A stretch of 64,000 nucleotides of DNA from Ascoidea asiatica JCM 7603. Lineage: Eukaryota; Fungi; Ascomycota. The DNA lies in NCBI GenBank assembly GCA_001600695.1, contig BCKQ01000007.1, positions 466,624-530,623 on the forward strand, given 5' to 3'. The translations under genes and the position numbers were made by a program. Of the stretch, positions 4,806-62,964 are shown piece after piece. Numbering within the stretch: the first letter of the stretch is position 1; every line of letters begins with the position of its first letter. The notes beneath the pieces are model-generated. The model did not search any database. It had not been told where the DNA came from and worked only from the letters and a program-made list of their open reading frames with translations.

Positions 4806-6464
4806 ATGGACAAGGAAAATTTAAAATCAAAATCAAAATCTGCTGGTACGGTTCTTAATTCCTCTGCTTCTTCTTCAAATTCTTTTGAAGGTCAAGAAAT
4901 AGAAGCTGATAAAACAGGAAAAGATTACCATGGATGGGAAAAAGTTAGATATTATTTTAGATCTCCAGGAAGATCATATTCTACTGTTTCATCTTCTACT
5001 ATTATTACTGAAGACTATAAAAATTCTTTAGAAAAAGATTGTAATGGTGACCAAGCTTCCATTAATCATTCCTTAGTTAAAAACCTTTTAGTTCCAAAAT
5101 CAACAATATTTGGTAGAGCTTATGATCATATTACTAGTTGTGCTGGTAATTCACTTATATTTTTATTAACTGTGTTGGTTATTATTGTTTGGGCTATATT
5201 AGGTATTGTATACGAAGCTCCTGATAATTGGCAAATTGCCATGCAAGATGGTAGTTCAATTCAAGCATATTTATCCGATTCTTTGTTGATGAGACAACAA
5301 CAAAATCAAGTTAGAGATTTATTACAATTAATTGCAGAATTAAGATCAGGATCAATTACTTATTTAAAAATGTTCAAAGATAATTTATCTTTTTCAAAAT
5401 CAAAAGAATGCCAATTAACTAAGGATGAAATTGAAGAAATCAATAAAAAGGTCATATCTGAAGTTGGTGATGCAGAAAGTTTAAAAACTAATAATTGGTA
5501 TGATTCAATTTCAAATATTGCTTCGAAGATTTTTGGTTCAATTTATTGTGTTATTTTATATTGGATTGGAATTTTTATTTGGATTGGATTAGGTTCTTTA
5601 CCTTATTTGAAATTCAATGATACATGGCAACTATATATTAATACTGCAGTTGCAGTTGAAATTACTTTGGTTTCAATGTTTGTTCAAAATATTCGTCATA
5701 GACATAATATTTATGTTCAAAAATCAATTGCATTAGTAATAGCTACTGATTATGATGTTGAATATAAGCTTAGAAAATTAAGTGGATTTGAAATGCCTGG
5801 TGAAAGAGTTATTATAAATGGAATGAGTTTCACAAAAGGTGAAAGAGCTATTGAATATTATGCTGCAATTATTGGTACAGGTGTAGGTATTGTTATTAGT
5901 ATTGCTGTATTTGTAACATGGATTGCAATTGGTGAGAAAATGAACTTTTCAGATAATTGGTGGTTAATAATTGGTACATATACTGGATTAGTTGGTTTTA
6001 TTGATGGCTTTACATTAAGATCTTCCTATTATCGTTATTATAATTTTATTTATGAACAATTTAAAAAAGTTGAAAATGAAGATTGCAAATTATTAAACAC
6101 TTTAAATATCAAAGAAGAAGATAATAAGTATAAATTAATTACAGAACATATTCCAATGTCTAGTAGATCTTTCAATTATAGAGCAAGTGCTTTTGTTGGT
6201 AGAATTTTTTCTAGTACTTTAGCAGTAGGAATTTCAGTTTTAGTTGTTATTGCTTTAATTTGTATTGCAAGTGCAATGAAATGGGAAACAACTGCTCAAT
6301 TAATTTGTAATTCACCCACAATGATCATCGAAGGATTTTGTTTATTAGTTTTATTAGAAGGTCATAATCAAAACAATGCTCAATTAAGAGTTTATGTTCA
6401 TGATTGCTTACAAAGAAAATTATATTTGCAATATTACATCAATAAAATGACAAAACTGAATTAA
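4806..6464 (+). CDS. FET4: Low-affinity Fe(II)/metal permease
   Basis: Repeated iron-permease units: WQIAMQDGSSIQ, WQLYINTA, WWLIIGTYTGLVGFIDGF, QLICNSPTMIIEGF. Confidence 0.93.
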   Translation: MDKENLKSKSKSAGTVLNSSASSSNSFEGQEIEADKTGKDYHGWEKVRYYFRSPGRSYSTVSSSTIITEDYKNSLEKDCNGDQASINHSLVKNLLVPKSTIFGRAYDHITSCAGNSLIFLLTVLVIIVWAILGIVYEAPDNWQIAMQDGSSIQAYLSDSLLMRQQQNQVRDLLQLIAELRSGSITYLKMFKDNLSFSKSKECQLTKDEIEEINKKVISEVGDAESLKTNNWYDSISNIASKIFGSIYCVILYWIGIFIWIGLGSLPYLKFNDTWQLYINTAVAVEITLVSMFVQNIRHRHNIYVQKSIALVIATDYDVEYKLRKLSGFEMPGERVIINGMSFTKGERAIEYYAAIIGTGVGIVISIAVFVTWIAIGEKMNFSDNWWLIIGTYTGLVGFIDGFTLRSSYYRYYNFIYEQFKKVENEDCKLLNTLNIKEEDNKYKLITEHIPMSSRSFNYRASAFVGRIFSSTLAVGISVLVVIALICIASAMKWETTAQLICNSPTMIIEGFCLLVLLEGHNQNNAQLRVYVHDCLQRKLYLQYYINKMTKLN

Positions 6465-8187: not shown

Positions 8188-8712
8188 GTTTGTAATTGTG
8201 TGATTGAAATATATCATAAACTAATCATCCAAGCCATTTGGTAATGATAATGAATACACTTCACAATACAAATAAATAACCGTAAAATAAAATCATTTTC
8301 CATACTCTCGGCAAATGACCTCGGTGACTGTACGCAGCCATGCGTTTTGGTGACTTGACTAGAGAGCAGGATATGTGTACCGCTTCTTAGTGCACCAACT
8401 AGGATTTTGCGGGGTCGAACTGAGTGATGGACTGGGCAGTTTCCAAAAAATGCCAATATTGCCTAATTTGGAAATTTAGACGGAAAACGGAAATCGAACA
8501 ATGGTTATCAATGCGGAAATCGACTGGGGGTGAGAAGAACTTCATCAAAGATAGAAGAAGAGATAAGTAAAAGTAAAAGATAAATGAGAGAGAGATAAAC
8601 AAGAGATTAAGAAGAAGAGAATTGAAGAACACAATTAGAGAATAACCAATTGCCAAATCAAATAAACTATCGCTTTCAAAAGAAAAGCAAAGAACTATTT
8701 TAAACAAACAGA

Positions 8713-37040: not shown

Positions 37041-38189
37041 ATGGATGATATAGATCCAAGATTTAACGTTGTTAATGATAATGATAATGATGGCAATGGT
37101 AATGGCAATAATAATAATCTTTCTGAAAATGTGAATGTTAATATCGATGGTCATAGTAATCAATCTAATATAAATAGTCCAAATAACCTTAGTAATGAAG
37201 GTAATAATTCCAACAATGATTCTAATAACAACAATGAACCTGGTTTGAATAATATACAAGTGGATGAAAGTACATTTGCTGATGTTGCTGCTGTTGCTGT
37301 TGCCGTTGCTGCAAATTCTGTTCAAAACGATCAAAATACTCAAAGTAATAATAACATCGACAACAATATTACTGATAATATTGATAATGAAAATGTTTTA
37401 ACTAATAATGAACTTGATGAGAATGACTTAAATAATGCAATTAATAGTATCAATAATAATAGAAATAATCAAATTAATGAAACTAATAATGATAATAATA
37501 ATCAAATTAATGATAATAAAATCATAAAATCTTCAAATTCAAAAATTGCTAAACCTCAAAAGAAGAAAATTGATAAAGTCAAAAATTATATTGAGCAAAA
37601 TTTAGTTAATCATATACAACATCAAATTGAAATTCAAAATCAAAACCAAAATCAAATTCAGAATGAAAATGAAAATGAGAATGAAAATGAAAATCAAGTT
37701 CATGACGAAAATCAAAATCGAGACTCCAATCAAGATTCCAATCAAGATTCAAATACCCAAAAAAACAATCCAGATAATCAACAACTAGTTTTATCAACAA
37801 TCAATGATGACAATGATAATAGTAATGATAATGATAAAACCACTTTAAAAGATAATGAATTGCAATTACAAATTTCAAATAGAAATAATAATTCCTCTTT
37901 AGAACAACATTTTAATCAAATTACTCAAATTAATGATATTAATCAAATTTTTAAACCTTTAAATCCAACAAAAAGAGCTGCTCAAAATAGAAATGCTCAA
38001 AGAGCTTTTAGAAAAAGAAAAGAACAATATATTAAAGATCTTGAAGCTCAAGTAAGTAAAGTAAAATCTTTAGAAGAAGAAATTGATTATTTAAAAAAGG
38101 AAAATCAACAATTGAGAGATTATACTTTAGCTTTGCAATCTAAATTAATTAATGATATTAATCCTCCTTCAATAAAATTAGATAAATAA
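37041..38189 (+). CDS. Yap-family (KapC-like) bZIP transcription factor
   Basis: KRAAQNRNAQRAFRKRKEQYIKDLE basic region plus leucine zipper; Asn/Gln-rich N-terminus; no cysteine-rich domain. Confidence 0.88.
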   Translation: MDDIDPRFNVVNDNDNDGNGNGNNNNLSENVNVNIDGHSNQSNINSPNNLSNEGNNSNNDSNNNNEPGLNNIQVDESTFADVAAVAVAVAANSVQNDQNTQSNNNIDNNITDNIDNENVLTNNELDENDLNNAINSINNNRNNQINETNNDNNNQINDNKIIKSSNSKIAKPQKKKIDKVKNYIEQNLVNHIQHQIEIQNQNQNQIQNENENENENENQVHDENQNRDSNQDSNQDSNTQKNNPDNQQLVLSTINDDNDNSNDNDKTTLKDNELQLQISNRNNNSSLEQHFNQITQINDINQIFKPLNPTKRAAQNRNAQRAFRKRKEQYIKDLEAQVSKVKSLEEEIDYLKKENQQLRDYTLALQSKLINDINPPSIKLDK

Positions 38190-38683
38190 TCAAAGTTTAT
38201 CCATACTCTTCTATATCTATCCATATATACAGTATATGTTGTGTATCTTATTTTTACTTATTTTCACTTATGTCATCTGAATTTTCTCTATTTTTTTCTT
38301 GATTTTTTTTTTCCTTATTTCTTTCTTTTCTTCTTTTCGTATTTGTTATTATTTTTTAATATTATGACAGTTTTAGATTATTGATATCTATTTTTATTTG
38401 TAATAAAAATATTATTTGTAAAAGAAAATAAAATGTATTATATAACTGCAATTTTCTCAATTCAGTCCAAAAAACCACAAAATATAAATAATTAAGTAAA
38501 TAAATAAATAAAGAAAAAGCTCAAAATGATTCAAATTTAAATGAAAGATAAAGTCTAAAAAAAAAAAGTGATTAGAGAACGTAATGAATGAAACTTATAT
38601 AATAACAAATGTATAATGAAAAACGGGTAAAAAAAATGTATATAAGAGAAGTTTGAAAAAAAAAAAACTTGTATAAAATACAA

Positions 38684-59258: not shown

Positions 59259-59610
59259 AAATTCACATTCAAATCAGGTATAATACAGTTCAATTTTATC
59301 CAAAGAATAAAAACTGAAAAAGGAAAGAGTTTACAGACAGACTTCTTTCATAAATAGAATTAAAATTCAATATCTTAGTTGTTTTGGTTTGTTTTGTTTT
59401 AGTTTGTTTTAGCTACTTGTAGCATTAATCTATAATTTATATACAGGAAGGGATAGGCAGAAACTATAAAAAATTAAATAAAAATCTTGTATTTAACAAA
59501 AGTCATAAGGTGAAATTATAATTAAATTTATAGATATATAAGTACTTTGAAAAAAAACATTATGAAGGGAAAAATAGAAAATATTAAAAAAATCTTTAAA
59601 CAATATTAAC

Positions 59611-59907
59611 TTAAATGTATTTGCTTAAGACTCTTTGCCAAAAACTTTTTCTTTTTGGAGGAATTGTAGTTTGAGCGTCTTCTTTGGATTCTTCTGGTTT
59701 GCTCTCAATCGATGGAGGTGTGATCTTTGAAAGATGTTCTTTTGTTTTTGGTTGTTCATCTTTAGGTTTTAAAGTATTTAGAATTTCTTTTTTTGTTTCT
59801 TTTATATTTGATATATCTTTACTCTTTTTTTCTATAATATCATTCTTTAATTCTTTCTTTTCTAATTCAATTTTAGCACTGCTTCCATTCAACTGAGGCT
59901 TAACTAG
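59611..59907 (-). other. In-frame 98-codon open extension immediately after the KGD1 stop (candidate readthrough segment)
   Basis: ...CAA AAA TAA CTA GTT AAG CCT CAG TTG AAT...; no in-frame ATG; ends KRKSFWQRVLSKYI*. Confidence 0.65.
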
Positions 59908-62900
59908 TTATTTTTGATGATTAAATGCATCATTTAAAAATGTATCTTCCTCTAAGAGATGTGTCTTTTTATTACCAGCTGCAATTGAAGCTGATGGATT
60001 TCTACCAGCATATCTTATTTTGAAATCACCGTATTTTTCTGTAGCACCTAAAGTTGTATCTAATCTTGGAGAAACAAAACTCCATGGACCCATATTAAAT
60101 GGCTCTTCTTGACACCAAACAATTTCATCTAAAGCAGGGTATGAATCAAATGCATCACGTAATTGAGAAAATGGGAATGGATTTAATTGTTCTACTTTTA
60201 TAAAAGTTGTATCTGAAGCTTCTAATGCTTCTCTTTTAGCAAATAATTGAGCATAAACTTGACCAGTACAAAGAATAATTCTTTTAATTGATTTTTTATC
60301 TGGAACTTCTTCTTCAATGATCCATTTGAAATTAGTACCTTCTTCAAATTCTTCAAGTTTTGATCTTGCTAATTTATGTCTTAAAAGAGATTTAGAGAAA
60401 AATAAAATTAATGGTTTACGGAATTGTCTATGCATATTTCTTCTTAAAAGATGGAATAAATTAGCTGGAGTTGTTGGGTAAGCAACTTGCATATTACAAT
60501 CTTGATGTTGTCTATGTAATTTATGTTCAGATGGAAAAACTCTTGGATCTTCACAACACATTTGTAAATATCTTTCAAGACGACCAGAAGAATGTTCTGG
60601 ACCTTGACCATCATAACCATGAGGTAAAGATAAAACAATACCAGATCTTTGTTTCCATTTAGATTCTGCAGAAGAAATAAATTGATCTACAATAACTTGA
60701 GCAGTATTTGCAAAATCACCAAATTGAGCTTCCCACATAACTAAAGCATCAGGAGATGTTAATGAATAACCATATTCAAAACCCATAACACCATATTCAC
60801 TTAAAGAAGAATTTGAAATTGCAAAATCAGCTTGTTTATCATCAAGATGTTGTAAAGGAGTATAAGTTTTTTCTGTTTTTTGATCATGTAAAACAGCATG
60901 ACGTTGAGAAAAGGTACCTCTTTCAACATCTTGACCAGAAACTCTAACATGATAACCTTCTAATAATAAAGAACCAAAAGCTAAAGCTTCACCAGTTGAC
61001 CAATCAATACCTTCACCAGTTTCTATAGATTTTTTTTTATTTTTTAAAATTCTTTTTAAATTTGAATGAACATCAAAATCACTTGGCCAACTTGAAATTT
61101 TTTCACCAATTTCTTTTAAAGTTGTTTTTGGTAAACCTGTTGGTAAATGTGGTAAAATTTCTTCAGCTAATTCTTTTGGAGATTTAAAACCTTCCCATGG
61201 AGTTGTTAACCATTCTCTTGAAGTTGGTTTATATTCTTTTGATTTTGAAAAACTTTCTTCTAAAAGACCCCAAACCCATTGTTGATGTTCTTTAATATCT
61301 TCTTTTGTAAAAGTACCATCATTTAATAATTTTTTAATATAAATATCAATTACAGATTCTTTTTTAGCAATTGCTTGATACATTTTTGGTTGAGTGAAAA
61401 ATGGTTGATCAGTTTCATTATGACCATGTTTTCTATAACCAACAACATCAATAATAACATCAGAATGAAAAGTTGATCTATATTCAGTTGCTAAATTACA
61501 AATAAATACAACAGCTTCAACATCATCAGCATTAACATGAAAAATTGGAGCATCAATAGATTTTGCAATATCAGAAGGATATGGAGTTGATCTTGCAAAT
61601 CTTGGATCAGTTGTAAAACCAATTTGATTATTAATAATTATATGAATTGTACCACCAGTTGTATAAGCAGGTAAATGAGTTAAACCCATTGATTCATAAA
61701 CAACACCTTGACCTGCAAAAGCAGAATCACCATGACATAAAACAGATAAAGCTTTATTAAAATTACCTAAATCATTTTTATAATATTGAATAGCTCTTGT
61801 TCTACCTAAAACAACAGGATCTTCAGCTTCTAAATGAGAAGGATTTGCAACAACAGATAAATTAATATGAGAACCATGAACAGTTGGTCTTTGATAATTC
61901 ATACCTAAATGATATTTTACATCACCAGAGCCTTCATCATTTTTTTTTGAACCAGTAAATTCACTAAAAATTGATTCATTTGGTTTTCTAACAACATTTG
62001 AAAGTACATTTAATCTACCTCTATGAGCCATACCAATTACACAATCTTCAGCACCAAATTCAACAGCTTTATCAATTAAAGATTTCATTCCTACAACAAC
62101 AGATTCTTCACCTTCAAGACCAAATCTTTTATCATTTGGAAATTTAGTTGATAAAAAAGTTTCAAAACTTGTTGCCCAAATTAAACGATCTAAAATTTGA
62201 CGTTTTTCATCATTAGTATATTTAAATGGTTTTGGAACTTGAATTCTTTCTCTTAACCAATTACATTTTTCTCTTTCAGAAATATGAATATATTCAATAC
62301 CATAAGTATTACAATATAAATTTTCACAAATATTTATAATTTCTTTTAATTTTAATTTTCCATTATTTTTATCATTTGAAAATCTTGGTAAAATTCCAGG
62401 GCCTAAAGTAATTTCTTTTTCTAAATCATCTTTTGTAAAATTATAATAATCTAAATTTAATTCTTTTGGTTTTGAATTTTGTCCAAAAGATATATTTAAA
62501 GGATCTAAACTTGCAGCTTGATGACCTCTAACTTCATAAGCTCTAACTAATAATTGAATTTTTAAATGAAATATTATATTTGAATTTGATGAATTTAAAT
62601 CATTTGAAGAATTTTGTGTTAAATTTTGTAAATTATCACCAGCAATTGGTACTAAATTTGGAGGAGCTTGAAAAGCTTGTTTTGGATTAATACCATTTTT
62701 TAAATTTTTAAAATATATATTCCAAGAAATATGAACAGAATTTGGATCATTTAACCAAGATTTATACATTTCATCTATATAAGTTGCATTATTTGTTGAT
62801 AAAAATACATCTTGAGATTGAGAAGCATTTGAAGAATTTGAATTTGATAAATATTTCTTTGAATTGATTAAATTAATAGAATTTAATTTTGAGAAACTAT

Positions 62901-62964
62901 TTAAATTACTTAAATTTGAACAAAATTTAAGAGATTTTAAATTTTTTATATTATTTCTTAACAT
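59908..62964 (-). CDS. KGD1: 2-oxoglutarate dehydrogenase E1, mitochondrial
   Basis: GMAHRGRLN, GDVKYHLG, ANPSHLEA, HGDSAFAGQG, WEAQFGDF, PHGYDGQGPEHSS; N-terminal presequence. Confidence 0.98.
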   Translation of the reverse strand: MLRNNIKNLKSLKFCSNLSNLNSFSKLNSINLINSKKYLSNSNSSNASQSQDVFLSTNNATYIDEMYKSWLNDPNSVHISWNIYFKNLKNGINPKQAFQAPPNLVPIAGDNLQNLTQNSSNDLNSSNSNIIFHLKIQLLVRAYEVRGHQAASLDPLNISFGQNSKPKELNLDYYNFTKDDLEKEITLGPGILPRFSNDKNNGKLKLKEIINICENLYCNTYGIEYIHISEREKCNWLRERIQVPKPFKYTNDEKRQILDRLIWATSFETFLSTKFPNDKRFGLEGEESVVVGMKSLIDKAVEFGAEDCVIGMAHRGRLNVLSNVVRKPNESIFSEFTGSKKNDEGSGDVKYHLGMNYQRPTVHGSHINLSVVANPSHLEAEDPVVLGRTRAIQYYKNDLGNFNKALSVLCHGDSAFAGQGVVYESMGLTHLPAYTTGGTIHIIINNQIGFTTDPRFARSTPYPSDIAKSIDAPIFHVNADDVEAVVFICNLATEYRSTFHSDVIIDVVGYRKHGHNETDQPFFTQPKMYQAIAKKESVIDIYIKKLLNDGTFTKEDIKEHQQWVWGLLEESFSKSKEYKPTSREWLTTPWEGFKSPKELAEEILPHLPTGLPKTTLKEIGEKISSWPSDFDVHSNLKRILKNKKKSIETGEGIDWSTGEALAFGSLLLEGYHVRVSGQDVERGTFSQRHAVLHDQKTEKTYTPLQHLDDKQADFAISNSSLSEYGVMGFEYGYSLTSPDALVMWEAQFGDFANTAQVIVDQFISSAESKWKQRSGIVLSLPHGYDGQGPEHSSGRLERYLQMCCEDPRVFPSEHKLHRQHQDCNMQVAYPTTPANLFHLLRRNMHRQFRKPLILFFSKSLLRHKLARSKLEEFEEGTNFKWIIEEEVPDKKSIKRIILCTGQVYAQLFAKREALEASDTTFIKVEQLNPFPFSQLRDAFDSYPALDEIVWCQEEPFNMGPWSFVSPRLDTTLGATEKYGDFKIRYAGRNPSASIAAGNKKTHLLEEDTFLNDAFNHQK

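Follow-up and report, generated by a model that had tools for sequence, protein, structure and literature searches.

The region examined here lies at the end of KGD1, the gene for the E1 component of 2-oxoglutarate dehydrogenase (OGDH), in the yeast Ascoidea asiatica JCM 7603. It is part of a 64,000-nucleotide (nt) stretch of DNA (GenBank assembly GCA_001600695.1, contig BCKQ01000007.1, positions 466,624 to 530,623), referred to at its full length as the window. KGD1 ends in a TAA codon, and behind it the same reading frame stays open for another 98 sense codons, termed the tail herein. An earlier reading made from the letters of the window (the sequence-only reading) had proposed that this stop is read through to give a minor, C-terminally extended enzyme. 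By window position, the features of the locus are as follows.

59911-62964, minus strand: KGD1 coding sequence (CDS), OGDH E1, 1018 amino acids (aa), identified by open reading frame (ORF) translation, Pfam, and homologues.
59908-59910, minus strand: TAA, the ancestral KGD1 stop and proposed leaky codon, placed by the C-terminal end of the Pfam domain, the ends of homologues, and DNA runs.
59904-59913, minus strand: stop context, in which AAA precedes and CTAG follows the stop (itself part of the span).
59904-59907, minus strand: CTAG directly 3' of the KGD1 stop.
59614-59907, minus strand: tail of 98 in-frame sense codons.
59656-59907, minus strand: tail linker of 84 codons, rich in Lys, Glu, Pro, and Ser and without an aromatic residue.
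59614-59655, minus strand: terminal 14 codons, a predicted basic aromatic amphipathic helix.
59611-59613, minus strand: second TAA, which closes the tail.
59511-59610, minus strand: T-rich stretch directly past the tail stop, resembling a 3' untranslated region (3'UTR), with TATATA at 59535-59540.

The ORF at 59908-62964 on the minus strand, stop included, was uninterrupted and carried four OGDH E1 Pfam domains (2-oxogl_dehyd_N, E1_dh, Transket_pyr, and OxoGdeHyase_C); its product was 81-82% identical to KGD1 of Ascoidea rubescens. OxoGdeHyase_C spanned residues 867-1014 over the full profile (1-151), and the domain ended 4 residues ahead of the TAA. All of the best 120 budding-yeast homologues (120/120) terminated within a few residues of this codon; because they end near the same point, the TAA at 59908-59910 is the ancestral stop. 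Contigs from three DNA runs, which came from two studies (2016 and 2023) and are possibly source data of the same strain, matched 59413-60300 with zero differing letters at a depth of 37-51. The stop is therefore not an assembly slip. Thus, the arrangement first described from the letters, a TAA followed by CTAG and 98 in-frame sense codons lacking Met, was recovered both in the sequence and in the three runs, and the complete OxoGdeHyase_C domain and the homologue ends agree with the claim that the TAA is the original stop rather than a lesion. The G+C content of KGD1 coding DNA was 0.27 in the window vs 0.43 in A. rubescens.

The tail holds 0.50 A and 0.21 T. Given this base composition, the probability that 98 codons stay open was 2.4e-4, and mononucleotide shuffles stayed open in 6 of 20000 and 0 of 5000 cases, in line with the prior assertion that so long a frame is unlikely by chance. 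The remaining two frames of the same DNA contained 9 and 8 stops. Of the 21 window ORFs that reach 150 aa or more, KGD1 had the longest post-stop frame (the median of the others was about 6 codons), and only KGD1 had C at position +4, the first base behind the stop. The second-longest post-stop frame in the window comprised 64 codons (38187-38384, plus strand) behind the TAA of the ORF at 37041-38189; being T-rich, hydrophobic, and rich in Phe, Leu, and Tyr, it resembles a chance 3'UTR frame and serves as a negative example.

An open in-frame tail behind KGD1 was also present in relatives, with five tail-bearing lineages in all, one of which had a variant stop context. The stop codon, the codon after it, and the tail length in each were as follows.

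Window (Ascoidea): TAA-CTA, tail of 98 codons.
A. rubescens (L001): TAA-CTA, tail of 93 codons.
Saccharomycopsis crataegensis, two strains (L003, L004): TAA-CTA, tail of 65 codons.
GCA_000960405.1-type species, the assembly and many Logan contigs (L013-L016, L066-L074): TAA-CTA, tail of 71-76 codons.
SRR10989974 lineage (L011, L012; Logan SRR10989974, SRR10989976): TAG-GTT, tail of 54 codons.

The KGD1 of the GCA_000960405.1-type species was 82% identical to that of S. crataegensis and was placed inside the Saccharomycopsis clade; a further contig of this species (L002) breaks 11 codons into the tail. Behind KGD1 of Saccharomyces cerevisiae, Babjeviella, and the L008 lineage, only 1-3 codons were open after the stop, and 6 were open in Pachysolen. 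Cyberlindnera jadinii had a 50-codon, hydrophobic, T-rich post-stop frame behind KGD1 with the context TAA-GTA (L017, 4513-4665); frames this long can therefore arise by chance in T-rich 3' regions. In the L008 lineage (Logan SRR31925805, 3268-3408), 3 codons separate the TAA from a TGA, and the contig continues for 138 nt past the stop before terminating in an A-run.

A quick KGD1 tree united the window and A. rubescens with support of 100. The three lineages of Saccharomycopsis type that bear a tail formed one group with L008, which has none (support of 100); L008 was nested among them at 90, so that it looks like a natural loss of the tail. The KGD1 gene tree alone did not unite Ascoidea with Saccharomycopsis; these two genera make up the order Ascoideales (PMC11342251). 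The simplest history would be a single gain in the ancestor of the Ascoideales, with one loss and one switch of stop context. The SRR10989974 lineage (L011/L012, 3001-6150) is a GC-richer relative whose tail starts with a GC-rich predicted hairpin. At the 21 CTG codons of its KGD1, other yeasts mostly have Ser (82 Ser vs 10 Leu); CUG is therefore read as Ser in this lineage, which fits the CUG-Ser2 clade.

Several features of the tails were those of coding sequence. Given their own compositions, the probabilities of remaining open were 2e-4, 3e-3, 3e-2, 1e-2, and 9e-2 for the five tails, with a product of ~2e-11; the tail middles cannot be aligned between lineages, and the five open frames are therefore close to independent. 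In 9 of 10 species pairs, local protein similarity was higher in frame 0 than in either alternative frame, and within each genus it was significant. Between the window and A. rubescens, the frame-0 score was 72 (27 and 27 in the other frames), and between S. crataegensis and GCA_000960405.1 it was 54 (34 and 17 in the others); 0 of 500 shuffles reached the frame-0 score in either comparison. The first residues and the last dozen are common to both Ascoidea tails, and near the tail end one Ser is kept between the two species through an AGC/TCA switch of codon family, while Lys is kept through AAA/AAG changes.

Variation within species followed the same pattern. Eleven contigs of the GCA_000960405.1-type species carried seven tail alleles of 71, 72, 75, and 76 codons, and the indels separating them, of 3 and 12 nt, both keep the frame. 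These length variants consist of a Ser-codon triplet and an indel in a GAAGCA repeat. The 8 variable columns of these tails correspond to 34.6 per kb, compared with 6.9 for the CDS and 12-13 for the flanks; the C-terminal third of the tail was invariant among the 11 contigs. The two strains of S. crataegensis differed by indels of 2, 1, 4, 15, 1, and 13 nt within the 400 nt past the tail, and by zero indels inside it.

The end of each tail coincided with a change in base composition. T content rose at the tail stop in all five lineages, from 0.17-0.28 in the tail to 0.37-0.62 in the next 100 nt (0.21 to 0.55 in the window), and TATATA-type elements followed the tail stop in all five, which indirectly suggests that the mRNA 3'-end signals lie beyond the tail. 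Logan contigs break at homopolymer runs, and their ends do not mark transcript ends. Because open frames, frame-0 similarity, conserved ends, frame-keeping indels, and the composition switch occur together, these comparisons indicate that selection keeps the tail frame open and read in frame 0, with the sequence of the linker only loosely constrained. The coding-type evolution that the sequence-only reading had proposed to look for in relatives is therefore seen in the frame-0 similarity of 9/10 pairs, in the frame-keeping indels, and in the codon-family switch at Ser.

All five tails followed one design, in which a linker of 40-84 residues (68-89% disorder-promoting, 0-3 aromatic) leads to a short aromatic C-terminus. 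In the window, 79% of the linker residues were disorder-promoting, and none was Phe, Trp, or Tyr. The last 14 residues contained 3-5 aromatic residues in every tail and had a net positive charge in all but S. crataegensis, and the terminal residues of the five tails follow a rhythm of two hydrophobic, two polar, and two hydrophobic positions. These 14 codons lie at the following positions.

Window: 59614-59655, minus strand.
A. rubescens (L001): 8292-8333.
S. crataegensis (L003): 6181-6222.
GCA_000960405.1-type species (L014): 5092-5133.
SRR10989974 lineage (L011): 6109-6150.

The highest hydrophobic moment over 11 residues (0.52-0.73) was located within the last 13 residues of 5/5 tails. In the window it was 0.60, at tail residues 88-98, and the terminal 14 residues had a net charge of +5 and 3 aromatic residues. 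AlphaFold, run with a five-row alignment, predicted a helix at residues 89-97 with a predicted local distance difference test (pLDDT) score of 73-78, the highest of the chain; the window linker scored ~56 and, apart from a helix at residues 12-45, was coil. The terminal amphipathic helix that had been read from the window's letters thus reappears as a moment maximum at the C-terminus of each tail and in the predicted structure. Tail residues 12-45 (59773-59874, minus strand), which are Lys/Glu-rich and not conserved in the other tails, were predicted as one long helix (pLDDT ~56) and possibly form a single alpha-helix spacer.

The tail had no Pfam match, and none of 5.8 billion proteins of similar length matched it; a paralogue was likewise absent from its own genome (assembly of 71 contigs, 20.3 Mb). 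The one match among 1.84 billion representatives was of low complexity, comprised eight repeated stretches, and was taken as compositional. Two possible roles were rejected. A peroxisomal targeting signal type 1 (PTS1), already discounted in the sequence-only reading, does not fit, as the five termini differ, the tripeptide S/A/C-K/R/H-L/M is not conserved, and a PTS1-like tripeptide is seen at the end of the A. rubescens tail only. That the tail substitutes for the Kgd4 adaptor was ruled out because a Kgd4/YMR31 homologue is present in the genome (C3:1545074-1545217, L019; 31 bits, above the Pfam cut-off).

The nucleotides around the stop were also conserved. CTA followed the stop in 4/5 tail-bearing lineages, and AA occupied positions -2 and -1 in 4/5 of them vs 1/5 of the other yeasts. 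The codon after CTA varied among the four CTA lineages (GTT, TCC, TCC, and GCC), so that position +7 was G, T, T, and G. The sequence-only reading had proposed to look for a conserved stop-CTAG among relatives; the CTA was indeed kept in four lineages, but the following G was not, with two lineages having CTAG and two CTAT. In three of the species (window, S. crataegensis, and GCA_000960405.1), KGD1 itself has 87-93 Leu codons, and not one of them is CTA. Since CTA is not used for Leu in the gene yet is kept after the stop, the nucleotides themselves, rather than merely a Leu residue, appear to be selected, which points to selection on the stop context.

Published measurements describe such contexts as weak. 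Any stop codon followed by C is weak, UGA-CUA alone gave ~1.5% read-through in human cells, and replacing UGA by UAA before CUAG lowered read-through ~6-fold from ~31% (PMC4132726). For UAA in yeast, leakiness is highest with C at +4, a pair of adenines ahead of the stop promotes read-through, and the codon is decoded as Gln; a third known type of read-through combines UAG-G with a structure downstream (PMC4615788).

The frame is open, and it is conserved together with the context of the stop and the design of the helix; from this we infer read-through as the route by which the tail is translated. The rate of such read-through and a docking role for the helix are parts of the same proposal. 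We consider it probable that functional UAA read-through occurs across the order and yields a minor form of Kgd1 that carries a linker ending in an amphipathic tethering helix. In this mechanism, most ribosomes on the KGD1 mRNA would stop at the ancestral UAA, and a minority would insert a near-cognate amino acid there, aided by the two upstream adenines and the CUA that follows. In A. asiatica, the latter ribosomes would add 98 codons, that is, a flexible linker and a short, basic, aromatic amphipathic helix, so that one mRNA would give rise to two proteins. The arrangement would be old, common to Ascoidea and Saccharomycopsis, and lost in at least one lineage of the Saccharomycopsis clade. 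The helix may then dock a fraction of E1, and thereby of the OGDH complex, on a membrane surface or a partner protein, for which the matrix face of the inner mitochondrial membrane would be the simplest surface. A stronger version, in which part of the complex is anchored at the inner mitochondrial membrane or a partner through order-wide UAA read-through and UAA-CUA is a true recoding signal in CUG-Ser2 yeasts, is put forward tentatively, as a possibility rather than an expectation. Full-text searches yielded no publication that connects read-through with KGD1, oxoglutarate dehydrogenase, Ascoidea, or Saccharomycopsis; a proteome data set exists for these species (PXD009494; PMC6041473).

A number of findings weigh against functional read-through. 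A search for RNA runs of this organism that cover the stretch found none. UAA is the tightest of the stop codons. The L008 lineage, nested in the Saccharomycopsis clade, is without a tail, and the tail is therefore dispensable there; the SRR10989974 lineage has TAG-GTT in place of TAA-CTA, and the CUA context is therefore not obligatory. A downstream RNA hairpin was not consistently predicted (z-scores of +1.1 to -2.1). A stem starting 0-10 nt past the stop folds in 4/5 species, with weak z-scores, and none was found in the window; the GC-rich tail start of the SRR10989974 lineage folds well, with a weak z-score (-1.1). Similarity between the tail sequences of the two genera was not significant, and the case for common descent therefore comes from position, context, and design. 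The linker is fast-evolving, with a density of single-nucleotide polymorphisms in the tail 5x that of the CDS. Finally, the A-rich tail of the window holds AT-rich motifs that are possible early poly(A) signals.

The best surviving alternative, which we nevertheless regard as unlikely, is that the tail is translated by read-through but makes no working isoform, acting instead as a safeguard that tags or disables read-through products, for example through a hydrophobic or aromatic C-terminal degron, or being a neutral by-product. Aromatic C-termini are plausible degrons, and the 5x faster evolution of the linker relative to the CDS and the loss of the tail in one Saccharomycopsis-clade lineage both count in favour of this alternative. 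A degron, however, needs no 54-98 open codons kept across an order. Moreover, a tandem stop would be a cheap fix (TAA-TAA is used by 2 of the 21 window ORFs of at least 150 aa), and conservation of the leaky CTA itself, against codon preference, is the opposite of error avoidance.

Somewhat less likely still is that the frame is open and untranslated, either by chance or because an A-rich, T-poor stretch is kept for an RNA-level reason, for example as a 3'UTR element of a mitochondrial mRNA. The 50-codon chance frame of Cyberlindnera lends some weight to this explanation, as does the 54-codon GC-rich tail, which taken alone is not significant (P of 0.09). It is countered by the composition-conditioned probabilities, which multiply to ~2e-11, and by the pattern of conservation: the nucleotides of the linker are not conserved, whereas the frame, the frame-0 amino-acid similarity, and the terminal helix are, and the Ser near the C-terminus persists between the Ascoidea species despite its AGC/TCA switch. 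The chance frames that were seen are also hydrophobic and T-rich, unlike these tails.

To about the same low degree, the tail could be translated by another route, namely an infrequent splicing event that takes out the stop, RNA editing of that codon, or separate initiation as a small protein, each of which would likewise hold the frame open. Splicing across the stop and A-to-I recoding had been named as alternatives in the sequence-only reading, and neither found support here. For both the window and A. rubescens, the last 900 nt of KGD1 contain no 5' splice site of the GTATGT/GTAAGT type, and the two share no branch-point motif. In the TAG lineage a single A-to-I change would yield Trp, but TAA requires two edits to become a sense codon, as editing one A still leaves a stop. 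For separate initiation, three of the tails (window, A. rubescens, and SRR10989974) offer no in-frame ATG, and a separate gene would have no need to lie in frame with KGD1 and open right at the KGD1 stop in all five lineages.

Very improbable is that UAA is generally leaky or partly reassigned in the clade, owing to a suppressor tRNA or a change in termination, with KGD1 as one case of many: the tRNA history of the clade is indeed unusual, in that CUG stands for Ser (PMC11342251), but the other 20 long ORFs of the window had short or junk post-stop frames, and the pattern for an intron-less tRNA with a UUA anticodon matched at control level (49 matches vs 40 in the control). ARAGORN called no tRNA in the 36 pattern matches examined in this search for an ochre suppressor, which would miss intron-bearing tRNAs.

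The closest known systems to the proposed UAA read-through of KGD1 are the metabolic enzymes of fungi and animals that are extended through UGA-CUA(G) read-through, including peroxisomal isoforms of glycolytic enzymes, LDHB, and MDH1 (PMC4207609, PMC4359377, PMC5133446). As in those cases, a housekeeping metabolic enzyme carries CUA behind its ancestral stop, the in-frame extension is conserved, and a functional element, which for KGD1 is a predicted one, sits at the very C-terminus of the minor isoform. KGD1 differs from them in stop codon, in the length and nature of the added module, in the enzyme, and in the clade: its stop is UAA; its extension is 54-98 residues rather than ~7-20; its tail ends in an amphipathic aromatic helix and not in a PTS1 tripeptide, and the enzyme is mitochondrial; and the case, known from sequence alone, comes from budding yeasts (Ascoideales).

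Other read-through genes share part of this picture. In vertebrate OPRL1, OPRK1, AQP4, and MAPK10, as in KGD1, the CUA is conserved at the nucleotide level, the 5' context contributes, and conservation of the extension clusters close to the C-terminus (PMC4132726). In the vertebrate genes the UGA is invariant and the G at +7 is conserved, unlike in the KGD1 tails; the UGA-CUAG motif as such is absent from KGD1, where the stop is UAA, the CUA is kept, and +7 varies. The C at +4 and the AA at -2 and -1 in 4/5 lineages resemble yeast read-through contexts (PMC4615788), although the 3' hexamer does not fit the CAR-NBA consensus of the yeast stop-CAA-UUA type, and the cases known from S. cerevisiae are not order-wide conserved tails on a tricarboxylic acid (TCA) cycle enzyme.

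For the tail itself, a design parallel is found in bacterial MinD and FtsA, in which a C-terminal, membrane-targeting amphipathic helix sits behind a flexible linker. The tails likewise place a short, basic amphipathic helix (moment 0.52-0.73) behind a linker at the extreme C-terminus. There is no sequence homology, and in contrast to the bacterial proteins, KGD1 encodes a eukaryotic mitochondrial enzyme to which the helix would be delivered by read-through only and for which membrane binding is a prediction.

Conserved functional read-through is well documented in animals, in viruses, and in some filamentous and basidiomycete fungi, almost always at UGA, and to our knowledge there are few well-supported conserved cases in budding yeasts. 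The comparative evidence here points to UAA read-through that has been kept across a yeast order on a central enzyme of the TCA cycle, with an added module that resembles a tether rather than a peroxisomal signal. If this is correct, UAA-CUA can act as a recoding signal, a second and spatially distinct pool of the OGDH complex would exist, and, in the stronger version above, the tail would be the first membrane anchor delivered by read-through on a TCA-cycle enzyme. The five divergent contexts, with one loss and one TAG variant, would then offer a simple natural system in which to study the determinants of yeast read-through.

Two further observations concern the genome at large. The pattern CAATAACTA occurred 556 times genome-wide, vs ~1000 occurrences of a reversed control pattern. 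At least 41 integrase (rve) matches were present in the genome (e.g., C12:450472-450741), representing many retroelement copies, and one of these matches lay inside a 2355-aa open frame.

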